NCBI GenBank assembly: GCA_002104945.1
Contig: MCFH01000018.1
Span: 620,001-684,000 of the forward strand
DNA from: Piromyces finnis finn
Lineage: Eukaryota > Fungi > Neocallimastigomycota
Reading direction: 5' to 3'
Length of the DNA stretch: 64,000 bases
Shown: positions 11,824-61,497 of the stretch, one piece after another
How the letters are laid out: each line of letters starts with the position of its first letter
Numbering within the stretch: position 1 is the stretch's first letter
The notes under the pieces: generated by a model
Database searches by the model: none
The model's input: the letters and a program-made list of their open reading frames with translations, nothing else
What the model was told of the DNA's origin: nothing
Position numbers and translations under genes: made by a program

Positions 11824-12141
11824 ATCCATATTAAAGCATTAAGTTTATTAAATAAAAAAAATTTTTTTATATATAATTTTATAAAAAAGATTTAATGTTT
11901 AAACTACTATATTTATAATATTATTATTTATTTATAATGGATATATATTAAATTAATTAAAACTAAAATTAAAATAAATATATTTTTATATATTTTATAT
12001 TTCAAAAAAAAAAAAAAAGTTTTTCTAAATTTAAATTTAAAAATATTACATTATGAATTTTAAATAAAAGATATATGAAATAATTATTAAATTAAAAGTT
12101 GGTATACAAAAAAAAAATAGAATACAAAATAAAAGATATTG

Positions 12142-13194
12142 ATGAATATTGTTAATAAAAGACTTTTAAGTCAACAATTAATTTCACCTCAATTCGTTGA
12201 TCCGGTGGATGTAGTAGAATGGATGGGAGCTTTACAAGCTCAAGATTATAAAATGATGAGATGGGCAGTAGCGGTTAGAACATGTAAACCATCTATTAAA
12301 CGATTTGAAGAAGCCTATAATAATGGAGAAATTATTAGAGTACATCTTTTACGAGGAACATGGCATTTAATTGCTGGAAAAGATTTACATTGGATGTTAA
12401 AAATTTGTCAGGAACGAGTAAGAAAAGCCACTTTTAGTAGAATGAAAACAAATAAAGTAGATATTACGGAAAATGAAATAGATCAATATCGGAATATTAT
12501 GAAAGAAGCGTTCAATGAGAAACATAGTGTAACAAAAGTAGATTTTCTTGAAGCCTTTTCAAAAAATAATGTTAAAATTAGTGATAGAAAATTAGGTTAT
12601 CATATTCGTTTAGCAGAAAATGATGGAATATTATGTAGTGGTGATTTAACATCAGGAATTTCTCCAACGTATAGCTTAGTATCTGAAAAAGTAAATAAAA
12701 ATAAGGAAGCATCAGATATAAGTTATGAAGAAGCCTTGAAACGTCTTACGCTAAAGTATTTTCGTAGTCATTCACCAGCAACCTTGGAAGATTTTGTATG
12801 GTGGACAGGTTTTACCAAAACAGAAGGGAAAAAATGCATTAAATTAATGGGAGATAAGCTTGTTGAAAAAGTATATGAAGGTCAAACATTTTATGTTTAT
12901 TCAGAAGGTAGAACAAAAGGTGTACCGAAAAGTTCAGTTTTATTATTATCCCCATTTGATGAATATTTGATTGGATACAAAAGTAGAGATATTGTACTGG
13001 AACCAAAGTACCGACATTACGCTCATAATAATAATGGTATTTTTTATCCGGTTTTTGCAATAGATGGACATATAAAGGGTAATTGGAAGCCAAGAAAAAA
13101 AGATGGCGATTTTACATTCTTTTCCCAAAAAAATAAAAGTAAATCTAGTCTTAAACTTGCATTTCAAAAATTTAAAGAATGGGGTGGTGTATAA
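12142..13194 (+). CDS. AlkZ-like (HTH_42 / winged-helix) DNA glycosylase, QAQ-motif type; probable bacterial horizontal transfer
   Basis: Intronless 350-aa ORF with GALQAQD, HLLRGTWH, YFRSHSPATLEDFVWWTG, LLSPFDEYLIGYKSR and NGIFYPVFAIDGHIKGNW, all characteristic of the bacterial AlkZ/YcaQ family. The ORF track starts at an upstream TTG; the first ATG is at 12142. Confidence 0.85.
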   Translation: MNIVNKRLLSQQLISPQFVDPVDVVEWMGALQAQDYKMMRWAVAVRTCKPSIKRFEEAYNNGEIIRVHLLRGTWHLIAGKDLHWMLKICQERVRKATFSRMKTNKVDITENEIDQYRNIMKEAFNEKHSVTKVDFLEAFSKNNVKISDRKLGYHIRLAENDGILCSGDLTSGISPTYSLVSEKVNKNKEASDISYEEALKRLTLKYFRSHSPATLEDFVWWTGFTKTEGKKCIKLMGDKLVEKVYEGQTFYVYSEGRTKGVPKSSVLLLSPFDEYLIGYKSRDIVLEPKYRHYAHNNNGIFYPVFAIDGHIKGNWKPRKKDGDFTFFSQKNKSKSSLKLAFQKFKEWGGV

Positions 13195-37546: not shown

Positions 37547-40500
37547 TTAATCCAATTGATCAACAATTTTCCAAAATTCAATATTTACACATTCAAAAGG
37601 AATATTTGGTGTTTCGTAATAATAGGTTGAAAAAGTTTGGGGTTTTGCTTCATTTTCATGGCAAGATATTGTTAAAGGTTCATTTTTAAATGTATCACAA
37701 AAAGCAGTTGTACCACCTTCTAAATCAGGATCAATACTTAGTCCAAAACGCCCTTGTTTTCCACCACCAAAAGCTATCATATCGTGAGAGGTTAAAACAT
37801 TAAATTCATTTAAACCTGCCCATTCATAAACTTTAAAGGAATGATGATTCTTTTCATCCTCTTTACACCAAAGAAAACATTCACCTGAACCATAAAATCT
37901 TGAAGAAATTTTTACACTATTTGGAATATATGCTCCAAAAATATGATTTAATGTATCCTTTATAACCATTAATAAAGGTCCTTTGCCAATGATACAATCA
38001 TAAAGAGTTAAAAAACTAGAACCATGATCATTTAAACTATAAATTAATTCCCAAGAAGAATAATTACGATAACGTCTTGGTAAATGGAATCTTAACTTTT
38101 CTGCTGTAATTGTATCTAAAATTTGATCTGGGGAGACAGCTTCTTGATCAATTTCACTTAACGGTATAGGTTTATTATCATGTTCTTGAAGCTTTTCTAA
38201 ATATTGAGCACGAGCATAAATAGGATTTAATAAACGTAATTTTTCTGGCTCCGGAACAATACTTTTAAAACTACTGGGTTCACCACTGTAACTTTCAACT
38301 TTTTTATTGGAAGAGGGTAAGAACATCGATTTTTGATGTCTGATCGTTTTTTCACGAACTTTTTCTATAAAAGCAGAATCAAACATGGATGTTTTGGAAG
38401 AATTAATTTTCTTTTCTGCTTCTGCAGTAATATAAGATGGGAAAAGACAAGGAGTAGATTTAATAAAGGAATGGTCAATAAATTCATTTTCTGATTCAAT
38501 ATCTTCATTATAAATATCATTATTAAAATCATCATCATCATTATCATTAGTGAATGGAGTACTTGACAAAAAGCTAGTATACGCTTTATGAGGTATTGAA
38601 ACACCATAGTATTTAGAAGATGACGAATTCTGTTTACCTTTGTAATATAGGGATTGAGAATGCTTTAAACTAATTTTACTTACTGTATCATTATTTCTAT
38701 TATTATCATGAATAAATTTGGTTGTTTGGTGGTTAATTATGGTATCTTCATTTGGATTCTTGAATAGTTTTTTTGAAACGCTCATTGATGGTAATGAAGA
38801 TGATAAAGTTGGTAAAGTATTTTCATTATTTTCATCAATTTCTTCTTTTATAGTCTCTACACTAGGATTCATAATAAATGAAGTAAGAGAGGAAGAAGAA
38901 GAATCAAGGGAATTTCTATTTTCGTCTCTTTTACCACGAGATTTAATGAACAATGCTTTTGTTTGAGACTTATCACTGGTATATTGAATTCCTTTGGGTA
39001 AAAATGATGTTTTATTTGGTAATGATTGACTTAAATAGGATGTGTTTTTGGTGTATGAAATATATTGTTTTATAGATTTAGGTTCCAATTTTGAGTTTTG
39101 TTCCATCTTGACGCTATCAATGCTGGGTACATTTTTTGTAAATACCGATGAAGTAGAATTTTGCTGTCCATTAAGATAATTCTTATTGTTTTCATTTTCG
39201 TTTTTACTTTTATTATTATTATACAATGACGTTGAATTAATTAAAGGTGGTAAAACTACATATGAATCACCATTAGATAATATAGGTAATGATGTCATAT
39301 ATGATGGATCATTGTTTTGATAATTTTGAGAATATTTATGATTTAATGAAGATAATGAAGAGTGATAAGATGGCATCTGCTGCGAAAGATTTTCATCACT
39401 ATTTGATGAGTTTATATCGTCTAACGAATTTTTACTACTATTAGATTTAGCATAGGCGTCTGATAAATTATTAAAAACGTTTAAAAAGGAGTGAAAATCT
39501 ATCTTTGAAGATCTTTTCCCTTTTAAATAATTGGGTGATGAATTTATGTCATTGATTTGAGTTGATTTGATTGACTTTCCTTTTTCTTTTTTCTTTGAAG
39601 TTAAAATTTGATTATCCATAATAGATTTAATTTCCTTTAAATTTTGTATACTTGATACAGATTTAATAGATCCAGTTTCATCCTTATTATCCACATTATT
39701 AGCGAAATTATTAGGATTTGATTTTGATTTAAAAGATAGGAATGGAAATGATGAAGATGATGATAATATAGAAGAAACAGCAGGATTAAATTTTTTATTT
39801 TTATTATTATTATTATTGGAAGGAGAAGAAATGATTACAGCGTTATCGATAGTGGGAGAGGATATACTTGGGCTAATAGGTGATTTTAATCCATTATTAA
39901 GAGAAGGACTAGAGAATGTATAAAGAGTCGATAACCCATTAGTTGTTTGACCTTCACTTTTTGAAGGTAATAAATTAGGAGTACTTGAATATTTTGATTT
40001 TTCATTACGATCAAAAAATAACCCATTCATTACCTTTTTTAATAATGAATTAGAAGTTGAATTATTTTTCTTATGAAATGTAGTTTGATAAGCATTTTTA
40101 TCTTGATGAGACATAATTTCTAGTTCCTTTACATCATTGAAAGAAAATAAACTATATTTTGGGTATATTGAATTTGATGTGTGAACATCATCATTGTTTT
40201 TAATAGATTCCTCAATATTATTTACAATAGAGTTTTCTAAATTGTCCATAAGAGATTGATTTAGTTCACTATTAATTTGTGTTACTAAATCTTCTGGTAA
40301 AATAATGTTTTCTAACAGATTATGATCCTTTGTTGATGACAATGTATCAGGATTAATAATAACCTTTTCAACAGAATTTGACATACTATTATTCTGATTT
40401 TCAACAACCTTTTTTATATTTATATCATTATTATTATCAGTATTCACAATATAATCTATGATATTTTCAACATAATTATTTAGTAAAGGATTTGACACAT

Positions 40501-40585
40501 TATCATTAACTCCATAATCCAAATTTATGGTATTATTTTGTAGCTCTTCAAGAGGAAGAGTTTTATTAAGAGTTAAATTTGACAT
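37547..40585 (-). CDS. OXR1: OXR1-like TLDc-domain protein with long S/N-rich N-terminal region
   Basis: C-terminal TLDc: WELIYSLNDHGSSFLTLY...IKDTLNHIFGAY...FYGSGECFLW...FGGGKQGRFGLSID..L..G....CDTFKNEPL...IEFW. Single 1012-aa ORF. Confidence 0.85.
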   Translation of the reverse strand: MSNLTLNKTLPLEELQNNTINLDYGVNDNVSNPLLNNYVENIIDYIVNTDNNNDINIKKVVENQNNSMSNSVEKVIINPDTLSSTKDHNLLENIILPEDLVTQINSELNQSLMDNLENSIVNNIEESIKNNDDVHTSNSIYPKYSLFSFNDVKELEIMSHQDKNAYQTTFHKKNNSTSNSLLKKVMNGLFFDRNEKSKYSSTPNLLPSKSEGQTTNGLSTLYTFSSPSLNNGLKSPISPSISSPTIDNAVIISSPSNNNNNKNKKFNPAVSSILSSSSSFPFLSFKSKSNPNNFANNVDNKDETGSIKSVSSIQNLKEIKSIMDNQILTSKKKEKGKSIKSTQINDINSSPNYLKGKRSSKIDFHSFLNVFNNLSDAYAKSNSSKNSLDDINSSNSDENLSQQMPSYHSSLSSLNHKYSQNYQNNDPSYMTSLPILSNGDSYVVLPPLINSTSLYNNNKSKNENENNKNYLNGQQNSTSSVFTKNVPSIDSVKMEQNSKLEPKSIKQYISYTKNTSYLSQSLPNKTSFLPKGIQYTSDKSQTKALFIKSRGKRDENRNSLDSSSSSLTSFIMNPSVETIKEEIDENNENTLPTLSSSLPSMSVSKKLFKNPNEDTIINHQTTKFIHDNNRNNDTVSKISLKHSQSLYYKGKQNSSSSKYYGVSIPHKAYTSFLSSTPFTNDNDDDDFNNDIYNEDIESENEFIDHSFIKSTPCLFPSYITAEAEKKINSSKTSMFDSAFIEKVREKTIRHQKSMFLPSSNKKVESYSGEPSSFKSIVPEPEKLRLLNPIYARAQYLEKLQEHDNKPIPLSEIDQEAVSPDQILDTITAEKLRFHLPRRYRNYSSWELIYSLNDHGSSFLTLYDCIIGKGPLLMVIKDTLNHIFGAYIPNSVKISSRFYGSGECFLWCKEDEKNHHSFKVYEWAGLNEFNVLTSHDMIAFGGGKQGRFGLSIDPDLEGGTTAFCDTFKNEPLTISCHENEAKPQTFSTYYYETPNIPFECVNIEFWKIVDQLD

Positions 40586-45710: not shown

Positions 45711-46400
45711 CTAATTGCTATTATGGGTTATATTTGCATTTTCAATATTAATTTTTATATCACTAATATCATTTTCATTTTCTTCAGATAATGGAGTCTT
45801 GCGATCATTAGATAATTCATTTTTGTCAGAATTCTTATTTATATCCTTTTTACTTGTTTTAATAACAAATACAAATATAATAATATGTGCAATCCAAACT
45901 ATAACAAGAATTATTCTCCCAACTAATGTTTTTTTCATCATAATAAAACCAATACCCATTAAAATAGTTATAACAATAATAACTCTAATTTTAATTTTTA
46001 ATGCCATTCCTTTTCCATTCGTGAAATCTTCTAAATTGTTTTTATAAAATTTACTATTAATAAACCATTGATGAAGACGATCAGAACTTTTTGCAAAACA
46101 TAAAAAAGTTAACAAATAAAATGGAACTGTTGGAAGTATTGGTAATATTATACCAATAGTACCTAAGAAAAAGCATATACTACCAATAATAATTAATATT
46201 ATTTTAATAAATTTATTTGTCTTTTTTTTTTTAATTTCATTTTCTTTTTCGACTTTTTCCTCTCTTATTTTATTATTCATTATTTCTTCATGCTGTTTTT
46301 TATTTACAATTATTTCTTCATCTTCAATTCTTTCATTAATTACTATATTTATTTTCTCATTTTCTTTTTTAATTGTTTTACATTTCTCTTCATTTTCCAT
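45711..46400 (-). CDS. YbaN / DUF454 family membrane protein; probable bacterial horizontal transfer
   Basis: Intronless. Core GSICFFLGTIGIILPILPTVPFYLLTFLCFAKSSDRLHQWF is the YbaN signature (G-x-x-G-x-x-LP-x-LPT-x-PF...F-x-x-SS-x-R-x-H-x-W). Charged N- and C-terminal extensions. Confidence 0.88.
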   Translation of the reverse strand: MENEEKCKTIKKENEKINIVINERIEDEEIIVNKKQHEEIMNNKIREEKVEKENEIKKKKTNKFIKIILIIIGSICFFLGTIGIILPILPTVPFYLLTFLCFAKSSDRLHQWFINSKFYKNNLEDFTNGKGMALKIKIRVIIVITILMGIGFIMMKKTLVGRIILVIVWIAHIIIFVFVIKTSKKDINKNSDKNELSNDRKTPLSEENENDISDIKINIENANITHNSN

Positions 46401-47653: not shown

Positions 47654-48034
47654 CAAGTTATATATTAAATATAATTCAAATTATTTTTATTTTTTTATTA
47701 ATATTCTATATAGAAAAATATAATACATAAAAAAAAAAAATAAATTAAAAATATGTATCTATATATAAATGAATTTTTGCTTTTTTTTTTTTTAAATTAT
47801 ATTTTTATTATTATTCAATAAATAGACTTTATTACTTTTAAAATATTTATAATATAGTATTATAATTGTAAAATAACTGTATATATTGAAATTGTAAATT
47901 CATAATTCATTTAAAAGAAATATATAATATTTTTGAAGTATCATATATATATATTGTTGAATAACAATAATAAAATTTTATATACTGTACAATAACAAAA
48001 ACAATATCAACATAAAAGAAAGAACAAAATAAAA

Positions 48035-49441
48035 ATGAAGATTTCTCATATTATTTCATTTTTAGTATCAACATCTACTGTAGCCTTAGCTCAGAGTTTT
48101 TGTGATGCAACTGGTCACAGTGGTGAAAGTATTAAAGTTAATGGTAATAAAATTGGTAAAATAGGAAATGTTGATTATCAATTATGGGCTGATGGTGGTA
48201 ATAATAGTGCAACTTTCTATTCTGATGGTTCCTTTTCTTGTGCTTTCCAAACTTCAATAGATTATTTATGTCGTACTGGTATGTCTTTTAATAATGGAAA
48301 AACACATTCTCAAATTGGTCATATAACAGCAGATTTTAAAGTTGTAAAACAAAGCATTACTAATGTTGGTTATGCTTATGTTGGTGTTTATGGTTGGACT
48401 AAAAATCCAAGAGTAGAATATTATGTTGTCGATGACTGGCTTTCTCCACAAAGACCAGGTGATTGGCTTGGTAATCAAAAGCAAGGTGATTTCACTATTG
48501 ATGGTGCTGAATATACAGTATATAAGAACGTACGTAGTGATCTCACACAATACTTTAGTCTTCGTAAGGTTGGCCGTAGTTGTGGTTCTATTAATGTTTC
48601 TGCTCATTTTCAACAATGGGAAAAACTTGGTATGACAATGGGTACCATAGATGAAGTTAAGGTTTTAGCGGAAATAGGAAATAGTAATGGTGGTGTTACT
48701 GGTACTGTAGAATTCCCATATGCTAAGGTTTATCTTGGCGCCCCATCTCAAAGTCAAAGTTCAACTCAAGGACAAGCAACAACTCAAGGTCAAAGTTCAA
48801 CTCAAGGACAAACAACAACTCAAGGTCAAAATCCAACTCAAGGACAAACAACAACTCAAGGTCAAAATCCAACTCAAGGACAAACAACAACACAAGATCA
48901 AAATACCTCACAAAATAATAATTGGGGTAATAATAATGGTGGTTTTGATATTCCAACTAATCCAGCTCCAGGACAAGCTCCACAATGGCCTGGTATGGGC
49001 GGTAATGGTGGCTTTGATATTCCAACTAATCCAGCTCCAGGACAAGCTCCACAATGGCCTGGTATGGGCGGTAATGGTGGTTTTGATATTCCATCTAATC
49101 CAGCTCCAGGACAAGCTCCACAATGGCCTGGTATGGGAGGTAATGATGGTTTTGATATTCCATCTAATCCAGCTCCAGGACAAGCTCCACAATGGCCTGG
49201 TATGGGAGGTAATGGTGGTTGGAGTATGCCACCAAGTCCAGCTCCAGGACAGGCTCCACAATGGGGTAATATTGGTGGAGGTGCTCCACAAAGTGCTGTT
49301 ACCAATGCAAATGGTGGTGGTAATTGTGCAGGTGATTGGGCTCAATGTGGTGGTCAAGGATTTAATGGACCAACTTGTTGTACTAAAGGAAAATGCTTGA
49401 AAATTAATGAATATTATTCTCAATGTAAACCATATCTTTAA
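48035..49441 (+). CDS. Secreted GH11 xylanase-family protein with repetitive linker and C-terminal CBM1 (no dockerin); thumb-loop tip deleted
   Basis: Signal peptide MKISHIISFLVSTSTVALA; GH11 motifs VYGWTKNPRVEYYVV and SAHFQQWEKLGM...KVLAEIG; CBM1 CAGDWAQCGGQGFNGPTCCTKGKCLKINEYYSQC. Confidence 0.92.
   Translation: MKISHIISFLVSTSTVALAQSFCDATGHSGESIKVNGNKIGKIGNVDYQLWADGGNNSATFYSDGSFSCAFQTSIDYLCRTGMSFNNGKTHSQIGHITADFKVVKQSITNVGYAYVGVYGWTKNPRVEYYVVDDWLSPQRPGDWLGNQKQGDFTIDGAEYTVYKNVRSDLTQYFSLRKVGRSCGSINVSAHFQQWEKLGMTMGTIDEVKVLAEIGNSNGGVTGTVEFPYAKVYLGAPSQSQSSTQGQATTQGQSSTQGQTTTQGQNPTQGQTTTQGQNPTQGQTTTQDQNTSQNNNWGNNNGGFDIPTNPAPGQAPQWPGMGGNGGFDIPTNPAPGQAPQWPGMGGNGGFDIPSNPAPGQAPQWPGMGGNDGFDIPSNPAPGQAPQWPGMGGNGGWSMPPSPAPGQAPQWGNIGGGAPQSAVTNANGGGNCAGDWAQCGGQGFNGPTCCTKGKCLKINEYYSQCKPYL
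48757..49270 (+). repeat. Coding linker repeats: 36-bp Q/T/G units, then a 69-bp unit (GGFDIPxNPAPGQAPQWPGMGGN) x4 plus one degenerate copy
   Basis: Read directly; the 69-bp array starts at 48938. Confidence 0.92.
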
Positions 49442-50918
49442 ATTAAGTGTTTACCTAATAAATAATTATTTTGATTTTATTTATTTTATATATATGTTTA
49501 ATTTACTTTTTTTATTCTTTGTAAGATTTTTATTACTATATAATTTTAATATATATAATATTAATATGTATATAATAAAAACAATCATATTCTCTAATTA
49601 ATATCATTTCTAAAATAAATAAATTATTATCTTATTTACTATCATATACAATAAACATAATAATAATTATTAATAAAAAATAATATATTAAAAGTGTAAT
49701 ATTAGATATATATTAAAAAAAAAAAAAAAAACGATATTTTCAATGTTTTGCATGCTTGTGTATTGTTTGCAATATAGAGATTGTTATCAAAGAGGATTAA
49801 TAAATGGCATAATAATACTAAAATATACAAATTATTTAAATGTCATGAAATTTCGTTTTTAATAATAAAAAATAACATTAATAATAAATAACTGATGAAT
49901 TCTCTTTATATTTTTTAATAAAAATAGATATAAATACTATTCATAAATAATTAGATTTATATTTTATTTACACTCATTTCAATTAAAATTTTTATAATTT
50001 AACTATTAGTATTTTTACATAATATTATCTTTAATATTAATGCCTACTTCAGAAAATAATTTTAAGAATAATTTTATTTTATGGATCATTTTATACTACT
50101 TTTTTTTTATTGTATCTTCCTCAATAGAAATACAATATTTGACATTTTAAACATTAAGATATAGTAACTAAGTAAATTGTTGAAATATAAGTGTATATTG
50201 ATAATATTAATGGATTAAAATTAAAAAGAAAATTTACTTTTAAGTAACTATAACTATCAGAAGATTAAAATTTAAAAGGAATTTCACAAATTCATGGTAA
50301 AAAAAGTACAGAAAATTTAGTTTTTTAGAGAGGATTTAGGATTTTTTTTTAATGTTTATTATAACTAAGATAATATAAAATATCAAAGGAAATGATTTAA
50401 TAAAAATAATTTTTTAAAAATTTTTCAAAATGCTTGATCCAAAATTTAATCAATATAATAATAGTAGGTATCAATTAAAAATTTCATTATTTTAATAATG
50501 AATTGATGTAAATACACTAAACTCATCATCAATTACTACTTATTATTATCATTATTTTTATATTTAAAAGAATAAATAAATAAATTGTTTTTAATTTGAA
50601 TATTTTTCATATTTTTCATTTATTTATTTTGAACTTTCTAATTTTTATTATTTTTATTTATTTTTTATTTTCATTTTTTATTTTTTGTTATGTATTATTA
50701 TTATTTTAAATAGTTATCTTATATTGATATATAAATATATATATCATTATAACATAATTTATATTATCCTTTTTTACTTTTAACTTTTGGATTATTTGGA
50801 TTACATTAAAAATTTTTTTTTTTTTACTTTTAAAAAATTTTATCTTGATTCTATTCTTAGTATTGCTATTATTGTTATTGTAATTGTTCGTAATTGTTAT
50901 TATTATTTAATAGTTTTC

Positions 50919-58143: not shown

Positions 58144-59805
58144 ATGAATGAAATTGAAGAATTCAAATTATTTATTGAGGAAAATAAATGTAATCTTAAT
58201 AAAATAAATTTATATATTAATTCAAAAAAGATATTTCTAACCAAATTAAATAAGGAGACCCTTGAGATTGTATTATTCTCAATTGAATGTCATGCCTCTC
58301 ATAGTATCATTAAAATGCTTATTAATAAATATGGGAATTACAGTTTTTTAAAGTACTGTATTGATACTCATAATCTTAATGCACTTTCCCTTTTTTTTAA
58401 AATATTTACTTATGATAATCAATTTATTTTAAATATCATTAAACTTTTAAAAAATAACCCAAAAAATTTAACGGAACACTTTATGACCCTAATTAATGAT
58501 GAAAAATGCAAAATAAAGATACCAATATCGTTTTATAAAACGGCTTTAACTCACCGTCACTACGATACTCTTAAGCTATTATTAGAAAACGAAACACCAG
58601 AAACTATTTTAGTCATCAATGATGAATTAGATTTATTTTCAAATGCCGTTCAAGATGATAATTTAATGATAGTTAAAATACTTGCTAACTATGCTGTTGA
58701 TATTACTAAAAAATCAATTTATTTACCTGTATTAAAAACAGCATCCGAAAATGGCTATTTAGACATTCTTCAATATTTGTTAGATGTAGGTAATGTAGAT
58801 ATAAATGAAGTGTTTAGTTATGGATTTACTGCACTCATGATTGCCGTTAAAAAAGATTTACTACCAGTAGTTCAATTTTTAATTGAACATGGTGCTAATA
58901 TTTATTATAAAGATAACAATAACAATACTGCACTCTTACTAGGTGTAAGATATAATCGAAGTCAAATTATAAATTATTTAGTAGAAAAGGAAGGTAAATT
59001 TCTTTTCCAAAAGGATAGTAATGGTAAAAAAGCACTATTAATAGCCATGAAATATGAATATAACGATATAGCAAAAATATTATTAAAATACTATCCAGAA
59101 ATAAATGAAAAGGATGAACATGGAAATTCGTTAATACACATTGCTATACAACATAATCAGAAGGATTTGGTGAATGATTTAATAAGAAGGGGTGTTCTAT
59201 TAAATAACTTAGATTGCTGTAATAACACACCATTACTACTTTCAATTAAAGAAGGTTATTATGATATTGCATTAGAACTTTTAGAAAATAAAGTCGATAT
59301 TCATACAAAAGATAATGTTAACGATACAGCATTAATTATTTCAGCAAGAAAGGGTCGTCTAGAATTAGTTATAAGATTAATACAACAAGGGGCAAAAATG
59401 TCAGATAAGAATAAGGAAGGTTTCACACCTCTATTTTCAGCCTATACTGAGAATCATACAGATGTTCTCATTTATATGTTAGAAAATACCTCAAATGTCA
59501 ACGAAAAAAATAGTAAAGGTGAAACTTTGTTAATGTGTGCTGTAAAAGATAATAACATTATGATATGTAATTACCTAATACAAAGAAAAAAAATTAATAT
59601 TAACAGTAAAGATAATGAAGGAAATACAGCCTTGATTCTAGCCTCTCAAAAAGATAATTTTTCTTTAGTAAAATATTTAGTGGAAAATGGAGCCAATGTT
59701 CATGAAAAAAATAATCAACTCAAAGATGCATTATACTATTCATCCAAAGAATATGATTATAATAAATATATTTATGATTTTTTGGAACCATTAATGAATA
59801 ATTAA
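58144..59805 (+). CDS. Ankyrin-repeat protein (553 aa), cluster member 1
   Basis: Multiple G-x-TAL/TPL..A....vkyLve.GA ankyrin repeats; intronless. Confidence 0.92.
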   Translation: MNEIEEFKLFIEENKCNLNKINLYINSKKIFLTKLNKETLEIVLFSIECHASHSIIKMLINKYGNYSFLKYCIDTHNLNALSLFFKIFTYDNQFILNIIKLLKNNPKNLTEHFMTLINDEKCKIKIPISFYKTALTHRHYDTLKLLLENETPETILVINDELDLFSNAVQDDNLMIVKILANYAVDITKKSIYLPVLKTASENGYLDILQYLLDVGNVDINEVFSYGFTALMIAVKKDLLPVVQFLIEHGANIYYKDNNNNTALLLGVRYNRSQIINYLVEKEGKFLFQKDSNGKKALLIAMKYEYNDIAKILLKYYPEINEKDEHGNSLIHIAIQHNQKDLVNDLIRRGVLLNNLDCCNNTPLLLSIKEGYYDIALELLENKVDIHTKDNVNDTALIISARKGRLELVIRLIQQGAKMSDKNKEGFTPLFSAYTENHTDVLIYMLENTSNVNEKNSKGETLLMCAVKDNNIMICNYLIQRKKININSKDNEGNTALILASQKDNFSLVKYLVENGANVHEKNNQLKDALYYSSKEYDYNKYIYDFLEPLMNN

Positions 59806-59974
59806 ATAAATAATAAATATATACTTTTTTTCAAACTTAAAAATAAAAAAAAGTCTATGTAGTAAAAAAAAAAAAAACTATCGAATTTAAATAATATTTT
59901 TAAATAATATTTATTAATTATTTATATAATATTATATACTTTTTTCTCTTTTGTATGTGTTATTAATAATGATG

Positions 59975-60009
<35 letters not shown>

Positions 60010-60291
60010 CGAATAAAAGCATAATAAAAAAATAATATTTATAAATTAATAATTAATAAATATTATTTAAATAAATTTATGTAGTGTTTTAATATTCCTT
60101 TTATTAGTATTATTAAAATATTTTTTAATTATCATTAAAAATTAATTTATTTATCTTAATATTAAAATTTCAAAATTTGAAATTCTGAAATGCAATTTCA
60201 ATTTTAATTTGTATAATTTAACATTTATTATTAAAATAGATAGATAGATAGATAGATAAAATATACTTTTTTAAAATAGCTTTTAATAATC

Positions 60292-61497
60292 ATGGCGATA
60301 ATTGATAATGAAATTCAAAACTTAATTCAAAATAATGATGTCACAAATCTCAAAATTATACTTGATATCCCTCGTGAAACTTCATTTTATTCACAATTAC
60401 TAATATATGCAATTAATAGTAATGCTTCTAATGAAGTTATGAATATAATATTAAATTATATGGATTACTCAGTGTTTTTCAATACTATATCGTTAAATGA
60501 CCTTGACGGTCTTAAATTAATATATGATAAAATGATTTTTCACACCAATTTTACAAAAGACTATATAAATTTTATGAAAATTCATTTAAGTGAAAGAAAG
60601 TCAATATTTGATGAATTATGGAATTACTTTTATATAATAGCTATTGAAAAGAACTTTTGTATTCTTAGATTTTTATTAGTCTATGAAACTAAGGACACTT
60701 TAAATACTGTCAATACAATGTATAATATATTTCAAAAATCTATTGAAAAAAATCAACTTCCTATAATTCGTTATTTAATTTCTAAAGGAATAGATGGTAA
60801 GAATATTCCTCATCAACGGGATTCTATTTTATACACAACTTTCAAAAATGGTTTTATTTCAATGGCTAATTTATTGTTAAGCCAGAAAGTTTTAAATCTA
60901 TCAAACGAAGATCTGCTTGATATAATAAAATTATCACTGAGAAACAATGATGTCAAGATATTAGAATGTCTTTTTAAAAATAATATCCAAGTGAATGAAA
61001 TTAAAGATAAGTATGGTTATCATCCTATTCACTTTGCAATCAAAAATAAAAAATTAGAATGTATTGATTATCTACTTGAAAATGGTGCTTCTATTAATGA
61101 AAAAACAAAGGATGGATATTCACCTCTCTTTTTAGCCTATGATACTCATGATCCTTTAATCATTGAATCATTAATAAGGCATAATGCTGATATCAATGAT
61201 GTAAATAAGGAAGGAGAGACTATTCTTTTTCTTGCGGTTAAAGATAATGATATAGAATTAGTAAAATGTTTAATTAATAATAATGCTAATGTCAATGTTA
61301 AAGATAAAGATGAAAATACACCTTTAATGATTGCTTCCCATGAACGTTACTTTCAAATTGTTCGTTGGCTTGTGAAAGGAGGTGCAAATATTAATGAGAA
61401 AAATAAATATCACGATACTGCACTTTACTATTCCTCACCTAATTATGGATACAAAAAAGAAATATATAATTTTTTAAAAGTAAGAGGAGCATGTTAA
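60292..61497 (+). CDS. Ankyrin-repeat protein (401 aa), cluster member 2
   Basis: Ankyrin repeats in the C-terminal half; intronless; C-terminal TALYYS..Y.Y...IY.FL shared with member 1. Confidence 0.92.
   Translation: MAIIDNEIQNLIQNNDVTNLKIILDIPRETSFYSQLLIYAINSNASNEVMNIILNYMDYSVFFNTISLNDLDGLKLIYDKMIFHTNFTKDYINFMKIHLSERKSIFDELWNYFYIIAIEKNFCILRFLLVYETKDTLNTVNTMYNIFQKSIEKNQLPIIRYLISKGIDGKNIPHQRDSILYTTFKNGFISMANLLLSQKVLNLSNEDLLDIIKLSLRNNDVKILECLFKNNIQVNEIKDKYGYHPIHFAIKNKKLECIDYLLENGASINEKTKDGYSPLFLAYDTHDPLIIESLIRHNADINDVNKEGETILFLAVKDNDIELVKCLINNNANVNVKDKDENTPLMIASHERYFQIVRWLVKGGANINEKNKYHDTALYYSSPNYGYKKEIYNFLKVRGAC

Follow-up and report, generated by a model that had tools for sequence, protein, structure and literature searches.

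Structural and engineering work on xylanases of glycoside hydrolase family 11 (GH11) treats the thumb of these enzymes as near-universal and as essential for substrate selection, catalysis and product release. The Pro-Ser-Ile tip of the thumb hydrogen-bonds the xylosyl residues in subsites -1 and -2, and selectivity, binding and the release of products are controlled by the thumb (PMC3299623). For XynCDBFV of Neocallimastix patriciarum (3WP4, 3WP5 and 3WP6), E109 and E202 are named as the catalytic residues, and W32 and P151 form the narrowest point of the cleft (PMC5442702). Here, a 64,000-nt stretch of the Piromyces finnis genome (contig MCFH01000018.1, positions 620,001 to 684,000; the window, in which plain coordinates are given) was analyzed, which contains at 48035-49441 a GH11 gene whose product lacks this tip and keeps both catalytic glutamates. 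A preceding inspection of the DNA letters (the sequence-only reading) had allowed for a characterised thumbless GH11 subfamily as a ready explanation. Neither such a subfamily, nor a natural thumbless GH11, nor a characterised member of the clade described below was found in the open full-text literature, subscription-only papers (among them a GH11 review of 2012 and the thumb paper of 2007) lying outside this scope, and natural thumbless GH11s may have been mentioned in the subscription literature before. The proteins concerned are already public under automatic names; their sequence, fold and catalytic residues are those of a GH11, yet one structural hallmark of the family is missing.

Loss of the thumb tip and retention of the catalytic residues

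The protein belongs to GH11, as 120 distinct GH11 sequences of the PDB were matched by phmmer and Pfam assigned PF00457 to residues 46-219 (E 2.7e-30; score 105.8 bits, cut-off 27). Residues 19-235 align to XynCDBFV (3WP4) with 65% identity (E 3e-101) and one gap only, which comprises 8 residues at the thumb tip, where CDBFV reads TGPSIDGDTTF. The residues absent from the P. finnis protein include P-S-I-D-G, and the long thumb hairpin with P-S-I-x-G that is a hallmark of the family is missing. Nucleotides 48512-48565 (+) translate to YTVYKNVRSDLTQYFSLR, the peptide quoted in the sequence-only reading; it begins 9 nt upstream of the start given for it there, and 48521-48565 encodes Y163-R177. 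That reading had claimed that the PSIxG tip is deleted and that both glutamates are kept, which is borne out by the single 8-residue gap to 3WP4 and by the presence of E128 and E213.

The conservation of the active site was analyzed in 73 aligned sequences, both thumbed and thumbless. Glutamate occupies the nucleophile column in all 73, where the E109A mutant chain 3WP6 carries alanine, and the column of the acid/base (mature E194) is likewise invariant and kept in 19 of 19 thumbless sequences. In mature numbering, the invariant residues are Y100, W102, E109, Y111, Q153, R158 and E194, among others. The loss of at least one catalytic residue, which would mark a pseudo-enzyme, was thus observed in no thumbless member, both glutamates being present in every one.

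AlphaFold2 was run with the 73-sequence alignment and yielded a model of the GH11 domain with a mean predicted local distance difference test score of 96.5 and a predicted template modelling (TM) score of 0.92. In the numbering of the model, to which 19 is added to obtain protein residues, DSSP assigned the modelled thumb to strands 139-148 and 151-158 joined by a tight two-residue hairpin. Foldseek superposed the model on 3WP4 and 3WP5 with TM scores of 0.97-0.98 and root-mean-square deviations of 1.1-1.3 Å, and on bacterial GH11s with TM scores of about 0.8. In the predicted structure, the GH11 fold is intact and the thumb is reduced to a stub.

XynCDBFV is the closest solved structure. It shares with the P. 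finnis protein the residue numbering up to the thumb, an N-terminal extension with cysteine, W32, E109, the acid/base glutamate and the beta-jelly-roll fold, and it stands in the sister group in the tree described below. Unlike the P. finnis protein, which is 8 residues shorter there, XynCDBFV has a full thumb with P151-S-I-D-G. The P. finnis protein further differs by G28D, by E-to-K at the thumb base, by F-to-L, by L-to-R two residues before the nucleophile and by H-to-D and A-to-V near the acid/base, and it carries a long repeat linker plus a carbohydrate-binding module of family 1 (CBM1).

A thumbless lineage in anaerobic gut fungi

The search for the same thumb loss covered GH11 relatives of anaerobic gut fungi (Neocallimastigomycota), to which all of the closest protein relatives of this GH11 belong. 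A word-indexed protein search provided a set of 120 relatives, and further members were obtained through a thumb-region search and a cluster look-up. The identical 8-residue gap was detected in 12 of the 120 together with a common turn motif (Y-T-V-Y-K-N-V-x / x-x-L-T-Q-Y-F-S-L-R); the other relatives have a full-length thumb, except for P0063, which has a different deletion, and a few short fragments without the region. The same deletion is now found in 19 distinct proteins from Neocallimastix, Anaeromyces, Piromyces and Orpinomyces and from metagenomic or transcript-like contigs. These include N. californiae ORY62048.1 (GH11-CBM1, 76% identical to the window protein over its first 239 residues), Piromyces sp. 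E2 OUM63622.1 (89% identity), Anaeromyces robustus ORX85522.1 (GH11-CBM1) and ORX78329.1, and an Orpinomyces gene model. No characterised enzyme is among the clade members, whose labels are all genome-derived or automatic, for example 'endo-1,4-beta-xylanase' and 'concanavalin A-like lectin/glucanase'.

A maximum-likelihood tree computed without the thumb columns took in 12 thumbless members. These form one clade (Shimodaira-Hasegawa-like approximate likelihood-ratio test support 99) nested in the fungal GH11 radiation and adjoining the CDBFV-like group (support 96), with the bacterial Fibrobacter-type GH11s outside. Thumbless and thumbed sequences are 60-65% identical, and divergence inside the clade amounts to about 35-45%. 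The simplest reading of this tree would be one ancestral deletion followed by diversification across genera. P0063, a dockerin-bearing GH11 of 390 aa on a Joint Genome Institute (JGI) contig, falls outside the thumbless clade; its deletion of about 6 residues removes R-x-G-P-S and keeps I-D-G, and the thumb was either truncated independently here or is misrepresented through an error in assembly or gene calling.

The thumbless domain occurs in several architectures. It is joined to CBM1 in the window gene, its orthologues, P0004 and P0007, and to two CBM10 dockerins each in P0028, P0036, P0038, P0039 and P0136, while some members have no extra module. P0121 is a single open reading frame (ORF) of 617 aa that combines a thumbless GH11, two CBM10 dockerins and a canonical thumbed GH11; the identical protein is encoded in two JGI samples (L017:214-2067 and L018:32-1885), and a close variant, P0148, in a third contig. 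This plan of GH11, dockerins and GH11 resembles that of N. patriciarum XynA (2C1F/2VG9, 'bifunctional endo-1,4-beta-xylanase A') and other multi-GH11 cellulosomal enzymes. Unlike in XynA, the N-terminal GH11 of P0121 is thumbless and the C-terminal one canonical, which gives two cleft geometries and not one that was duplicated. These domain contexts match those in which active fungal xylanases are deployed, and the P0121 fusion suggests that the two kinds of cleft complement each other. The window protein had been placed outside the cellulosome by the sequence-only reading. This stands for the gene itself, which has a CBM1 and in a Pfam scan no CBM10-type dockerin (PF02013), and does not hold for the lineage with its dockerin-bearing members.

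Selection was analyzed in a codon alignment built from the encoding contigs (10 thumbless genes, 212 codons) with a maximum-likelihood codon model. The ratio of nonsynonymous to synonymous substitution rates (dN/dS, omega) of the thumbless clade was 0.157, with a log-likelihood of -3662.87 versus -3841.91 for omega fixed at 1, a difference of 179 units; the pairwise dN/dS of the window gene and its nearest relative was 0.18. Pairwise estimates by the Nei-Gojobori method reached 0.6-0.85 for the most distant pairs (with the Anaeromyces subgroup), values that were judged to arise from unreliable dS in extremely AT-biased codons, and the maximum-likelihood codon model was therefore used instead.

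The assembly at the deletion site was checked with Logan assembled contigs of four public runs (X1-X4), which were compared with 47700-49800. X1 is a DNA run and possibly the source of the assembly itself, and X2-X4 stem from other samples of two other studies. The X2-X4 contigs that cross the deletion site (47990-48514 with 48485-48827; 48001-48827; 48075-48827) contain 0 differences and 0 gaps, so the 24 nt whose omission during assembly had been considered are absent from independent runs too. The coverage of X2-X4 is confined to about 47990-49456, beginning 0-45 nt before the ATG or within the ORF and ending 6-15 nt past the stop codon, and X1 covers 47817-49701, about 200 nt further out on each side. 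This limitation to the ORF and short flanks suggests transcripts, and the window gene is probably transcribed.

Two further observations were made in these contigs. One X1 contig joins 47848 to 49657 and thereby omits 1808 nt with the whole gene; its shorter side is only 21 letters long and very AT-rich, and the join is probably false and repeat-induced, a gene-less allele being the alternative. In the probable RNA runs, extra short contigs of at least 95% likeness cover 48126-48267 and 48410-48693 with depths in the thousands, presumably as fragments of far more abundant transcripts of canonical GH11 paralogues, and the gene's own contigs have depths of about 6-60, with the reservation that contig depth cannot rank genes.

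A mis-assembly, or a recent private deletion in a decaying gene, was considered as the origin of the truncated thumb. All that speaks for this is that the deletion is unusual and that, in the probable RNA runs, contigs of the gene itself reach only a modest depth. Artefact and decay are nevertheless excluded, with next to no residual probability, by the identical sequence in three runs from other samples, by an intact 468-aa ORF with all modules, by the same deletion in 19 proteins from four named genera and by the rejection of omega = 1 by 179 log-likelihood units. The assertion in the sequence-only reading that the gene is not in simple decay agrees with the multi-genus clade, the omega of 0.157, the invariant dyad and the probable transcripts, and a deletion private to one strain and under relaxed selection is incompatible with its presence in multiple genera and an omega far below 1. 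The thumb deletion of the window GH11 is real and beyond chance, and this conclusion is held with high confidence jointly with its single origin, its sharing across genera, purifying selection, probable transcription and the intact fold and dyad.

Possible function of the thumbless enzymes

The gene product is proposed to be secreted and tethered to cellulose, and to belong to a paralogous GH11 lineage of the Neocallimastigomycota that is old and conserved. A single ancestral deletion of 8 residues would have cut the thumb hairpin back to a tight turn of two residues and removed the Pro-Ser-Ile tip that clamps the xylose residues at -1 and -2, and with it the narrowest point of the cleft opposite W32. 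The protein would still hydrolyse xylan with a retaining mechanism, in a cleft that is opened on its glycone side. It could accept xylan segments that canonical GH11s exclude, for example backbone with substituents close to the point of cleavage, and in exchange would probably turn over plain xylan more slowly. Such an enzyme would work beside canonical GH11s, the window copy being anchored to cellulose surfaces by its CBM1 and other members being attached to cellulosomes or joined to a canonical GH11 domain. A still-catalytic, open-cleft hydrolase active on xylan with a shifted substrate tolerance is favored with modest confidence from the sequence comparisons, because the whole catalytic constellation was kept over a long selected history, cleft changes were co-fixed and the deployment of the proteins is enzyme-like.

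The co-fixed changes comprise G28D, four residues from W32, E-to-K and F-to-L exchanges in the strands of the thumb, as well as H-to-D/S/T and A-to-V/I exchanges just before the acid/base; a position of these residues along the cleft is suggested by strand alternation. Two subgroups make up the clade. Subgroup A, to which the window gene belongs, shows L to R two residues ahead of the nucleophile and keeps the arginine at the thumb base (R167). Subgroup B (for example L005:3058-3717, L009, L012, L014 and L002:3049-3702) has a 4-residue insertion before the nucleophile, which may compensate for the loss of the thumb, and the thumb-base arginine is replaced by Asn or Lys. It reads WTLxSGISGVFEFY in place of the canonical WTRSPLVEYY, the second Tyr of EYY being kept and the first often being Phe.

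The different fixation of several cleft-side residues in the clade would also fit an active hydrolase or transglycosylase that has turned from xylan to another main substrate, with, for example, mixed-linkage glucan, xyloglucan or cellulose being attacked in a GH12-like manner. GH12 endoglucanases share clan GH-C, the beta-jelly-roll fold and the retaining two-Glu mechanism with GH11 and have a more open cleft. A change of substrate agrees with the role of the thumb in selectivity (PMC3299623), with the effect of altered thumb flexibility on the balance of hydrolysis and transglycosylation in BCX (PMC8251542) and with the targeting of cellulose, not xylan, by CBM1. It is nevertheless quite improbable, as the Pfam scan (E <= 0.01) returned only GH11 and CBM1 for the window protein, with no match to the GH12 profile or any other glycoside hydrolase family, every close relative is a GH11, and the residues around the -1 subsite are the same as in xylanases. 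The specificity of GH11 for xylose at -1 depends on palm residues too and not on the thumb alone, and canonical GH11 xylanases linked to CBM1 are common in these fungi.

Several points weigh against an active enzyme with an open cleft. The PSIXG tip and its proline are almost completely conserved in GH11 (PMC8251542), and deletion of P-S-I makes a GH11 inactive according to a passage in PMC7519127 that cites Paes et al. 2007. Tip contacts, conservation and inactive deletion together would naively predict an inactive protein. The clade omega of 0.157 is about three times that of a thumbed control (0.05), a contrast that is indicative only, since the control is small and consists mostly of near-identical paralogues. 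The branches in the thumbless clade are long, and the higher omega and the long branches are compatible with a partly relaxed constraint; either the constraint on the lineage is strong yet somewhat looser, or its function is diversifying. R167 at the thumb base, which the window protein keeps, is Asn or Lys in most other members. The cleft geometry is deduced from alignment and secondary structure only, and the RNA nature of X2-X4 is a guess of the contig-matching tool and not on record.

The main rival is a non-catalytic module for the binding of xylan or the cell wall. In such a pseudo-enzyme the thumbless GH11 fold would have been retained for lectin-like targeting or for loosening, CBM1 or dockerins serving for its delivery, and the thumbless half of P0121 could equally be a binder for the active GH11. 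The direct contacts of the thumb tip to -1 and -2 (PMC3299623), the raised omega and long branches relative to thumbed paralogues and the inactivation by engineered tip deletion, as far as it is related in PMC7519127, all argue for it. The engineered enzyme is Tx-Xyl of Thermobacillus xylanilyticus (Paes et al. 2007, via passages in PMC7519127 and PMC3299623), whose thumb-tip deletions resemble the natural lineage in the loss of Pro-Ser-Ile from an intact fold with both glutamates. However, these are single-step laboratory deletions that are reported in those passages to be inactive, whereas the natural lineage persisted under purifying selection with co-fixed cleft substitutions and has in subgroup B the insertion before the nucleophile. 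Pseudo-enzymes usually lose catalytic-site residues, but both glutamates and the surrounding Tyr, Trp and Gln residues are kept in 19 of 19 thumbless proteins despite the divergence within the clade, and the fungus already has dedicated small CBMs. A mere binder is thus considered unlikely. The sequence-only reading had listed a binder and a wide-cleft enzyme among several functions; the invariant nucleophile, acid/base and cleft Tyr, Trp and Gln favor its wide-cleft enzyme over its pure binder.

The same list had contained an inhibitor decoy. Such a protein would bind the proteinaceous xylanase inhibitors of plants (TAXI, XIP or TLXI) and thereby shield canonical xylanases, an idea that gained no support. 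Nothing direct speaks for it, and the grasses eaten by the host do contain such inhibitors. XIP-type inhibitors place a loop between thumb and palm (PMC9739030), so a thumbless protein is without half of this binding site, and Neocallimastix GH11s are listed as not inhibited (PMC9739030), which leaves little to protect. A decoy function is therefore highly improbable.

A bolder form of the open-cleft enzyme can be put forward only tentatively. Thumbless GH11s might be fully competent, with a specificity new to GH11, for example for arabinosyl, feruloyl-arabinosyl or glucuronyl groups at -1/-2, or with a strongly shifted balance of hydrolysis and transglycosylation. They would then have evolved to join canonical GH11s on heavily decorated grass xylans, which would account for the P0121 fusion. 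If full competence were true, the view of the PSIXG thumb as indispensable for GH11 catalysis would be overturned.

A natural lineage without the thumb, present in several gut-fungal genera and with its catalytic machinery under purifying selection, amounts to an evolutionary experiment on thumb function, and the thumb may accordingly be dispensable. If its members are active, they would provide GH11-sized enzymes that tolerate decorated xylans, with uses in grass biomass processing, feed and baking, and would in part explain why GH11 has expanded so much in anaerobic fungi. If they are inactive, they would represent a rare case of a glycoside hydrolase fold that became a binding module and still conserves its catalytic residues.

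Gene layout and genomic surroundings

The coordinates of the gene and its modules are collected in Table 1. The ORF is intronless and uninterrupted and encodes 468 aa plus a stop codon. The signal peptide is predicted from the hydrophobic N-terminus and from the start of the crystallised mature CDBFV chain, which begins at the aligned QSFC; all thumbless clade members have the same N-terminal pattern. The match to CBM1 (E 2.8e-10, 40.4 bits against a cut-off of 20.6) includes a pattern of Cys and aromatic residues common to the orthologues. The short-read contigs of every run break in the repeat 48934-49264, whose copy number is the least certain part of the gene, and the linker repeats of the orthologues are unrelated to it and of other length.

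Table 1. Features of the thumb-truncated GH11 gene in the window
Feature	Position	Strand	Basis
Complete gene: signal peptide, thumb-truncated GH11, repeat linker, CBM1	48035..49441	+	ORF list, Pfam, probable transcript contigs
Predicted signal peptide, residues 1-19, ending ...VALA before QSFC	48035..48091	+	Hydrophobic N-terminus
GH11 beta-jelly-roll catalytic domain, residues 20-237	48092..48745	+	phmmer to 3WP4, E 3e-101; AlphaFold2; Foldseek
Codon of the catalytic nucleophile E128 (mature E109, = CDBFV E109), motif VEYY	48416..48418	+	CDBFV alignment
Truncated thumb: strands 158-167 and 170-177, two-residue turn S168-D169 (nt 48536-48541)	48506..48565	+	DSSP of the model; 8-residue gap to CDBFV and thumbed relatives
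Codon of the acid/base E213 (mature E194, = CDBFV E202), motif LAEIG	48671..48673	+	CDBFV alignment
Linker part 1: Thr/Gln/Gly-rich tandem repeats, 36-nt period, 4.4 copies	48747..48904	+	Tandem Repeats Finder, translation
Linker part 2: 69-nt tandem repeat, 4.8 copies, 94% matches; unit of 23 aa, Gly/Pro/Gln/Trp	48934..49264	+	Tandem Repeats Finder
C-terminal CBM1 (fungal cellulose-binding module), Pfam match to residues 435-461, continuing to the C-terminus	49337..49438	+	Pfam PF00734

The window is very AT-rich (GC 19.6%). A scan for bacterial promoters and terminators gave counts equal to those in shuffled sequence; these are bacterial signals that are irrelevant for a eukaryote. The neighboring ORFs encode F-box, AlkZ-like, C2H2 zinc finger, TLDc, DUF454 and ankyrin proteins, and as none of these is carbohydrate-active, the GH11 gene lies outside any cluster of carbohydrate-active enzymes. 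Among them are a protein matching AlkZ-like DNA glycosylases, a family typical of bacteria (12139-13194, +; PF06224, E 2.3e-49), a TLDc-domain protein of 1012 aa (37547-40585, -), a DUF454 protein (45711-46400, -) and two adjacent ankyrin-repeat proteins (58144-61497, +). A tblastn search of the 64-kb window returned only the gene itself and no second GH11 paralogue. Elsewhere, four near-identical canonical GH11 genes lie in mixed orientation within 11.5 kb of a 21.4-kb contig of Neocallimastix sp. 'constans' (JBODTK010000029.1; L015). Their pairwise dS of 0.07-0.11 and dN/dS of at most 0.06 point to a recent tandem or inverted amplification of thumbed xylanases.

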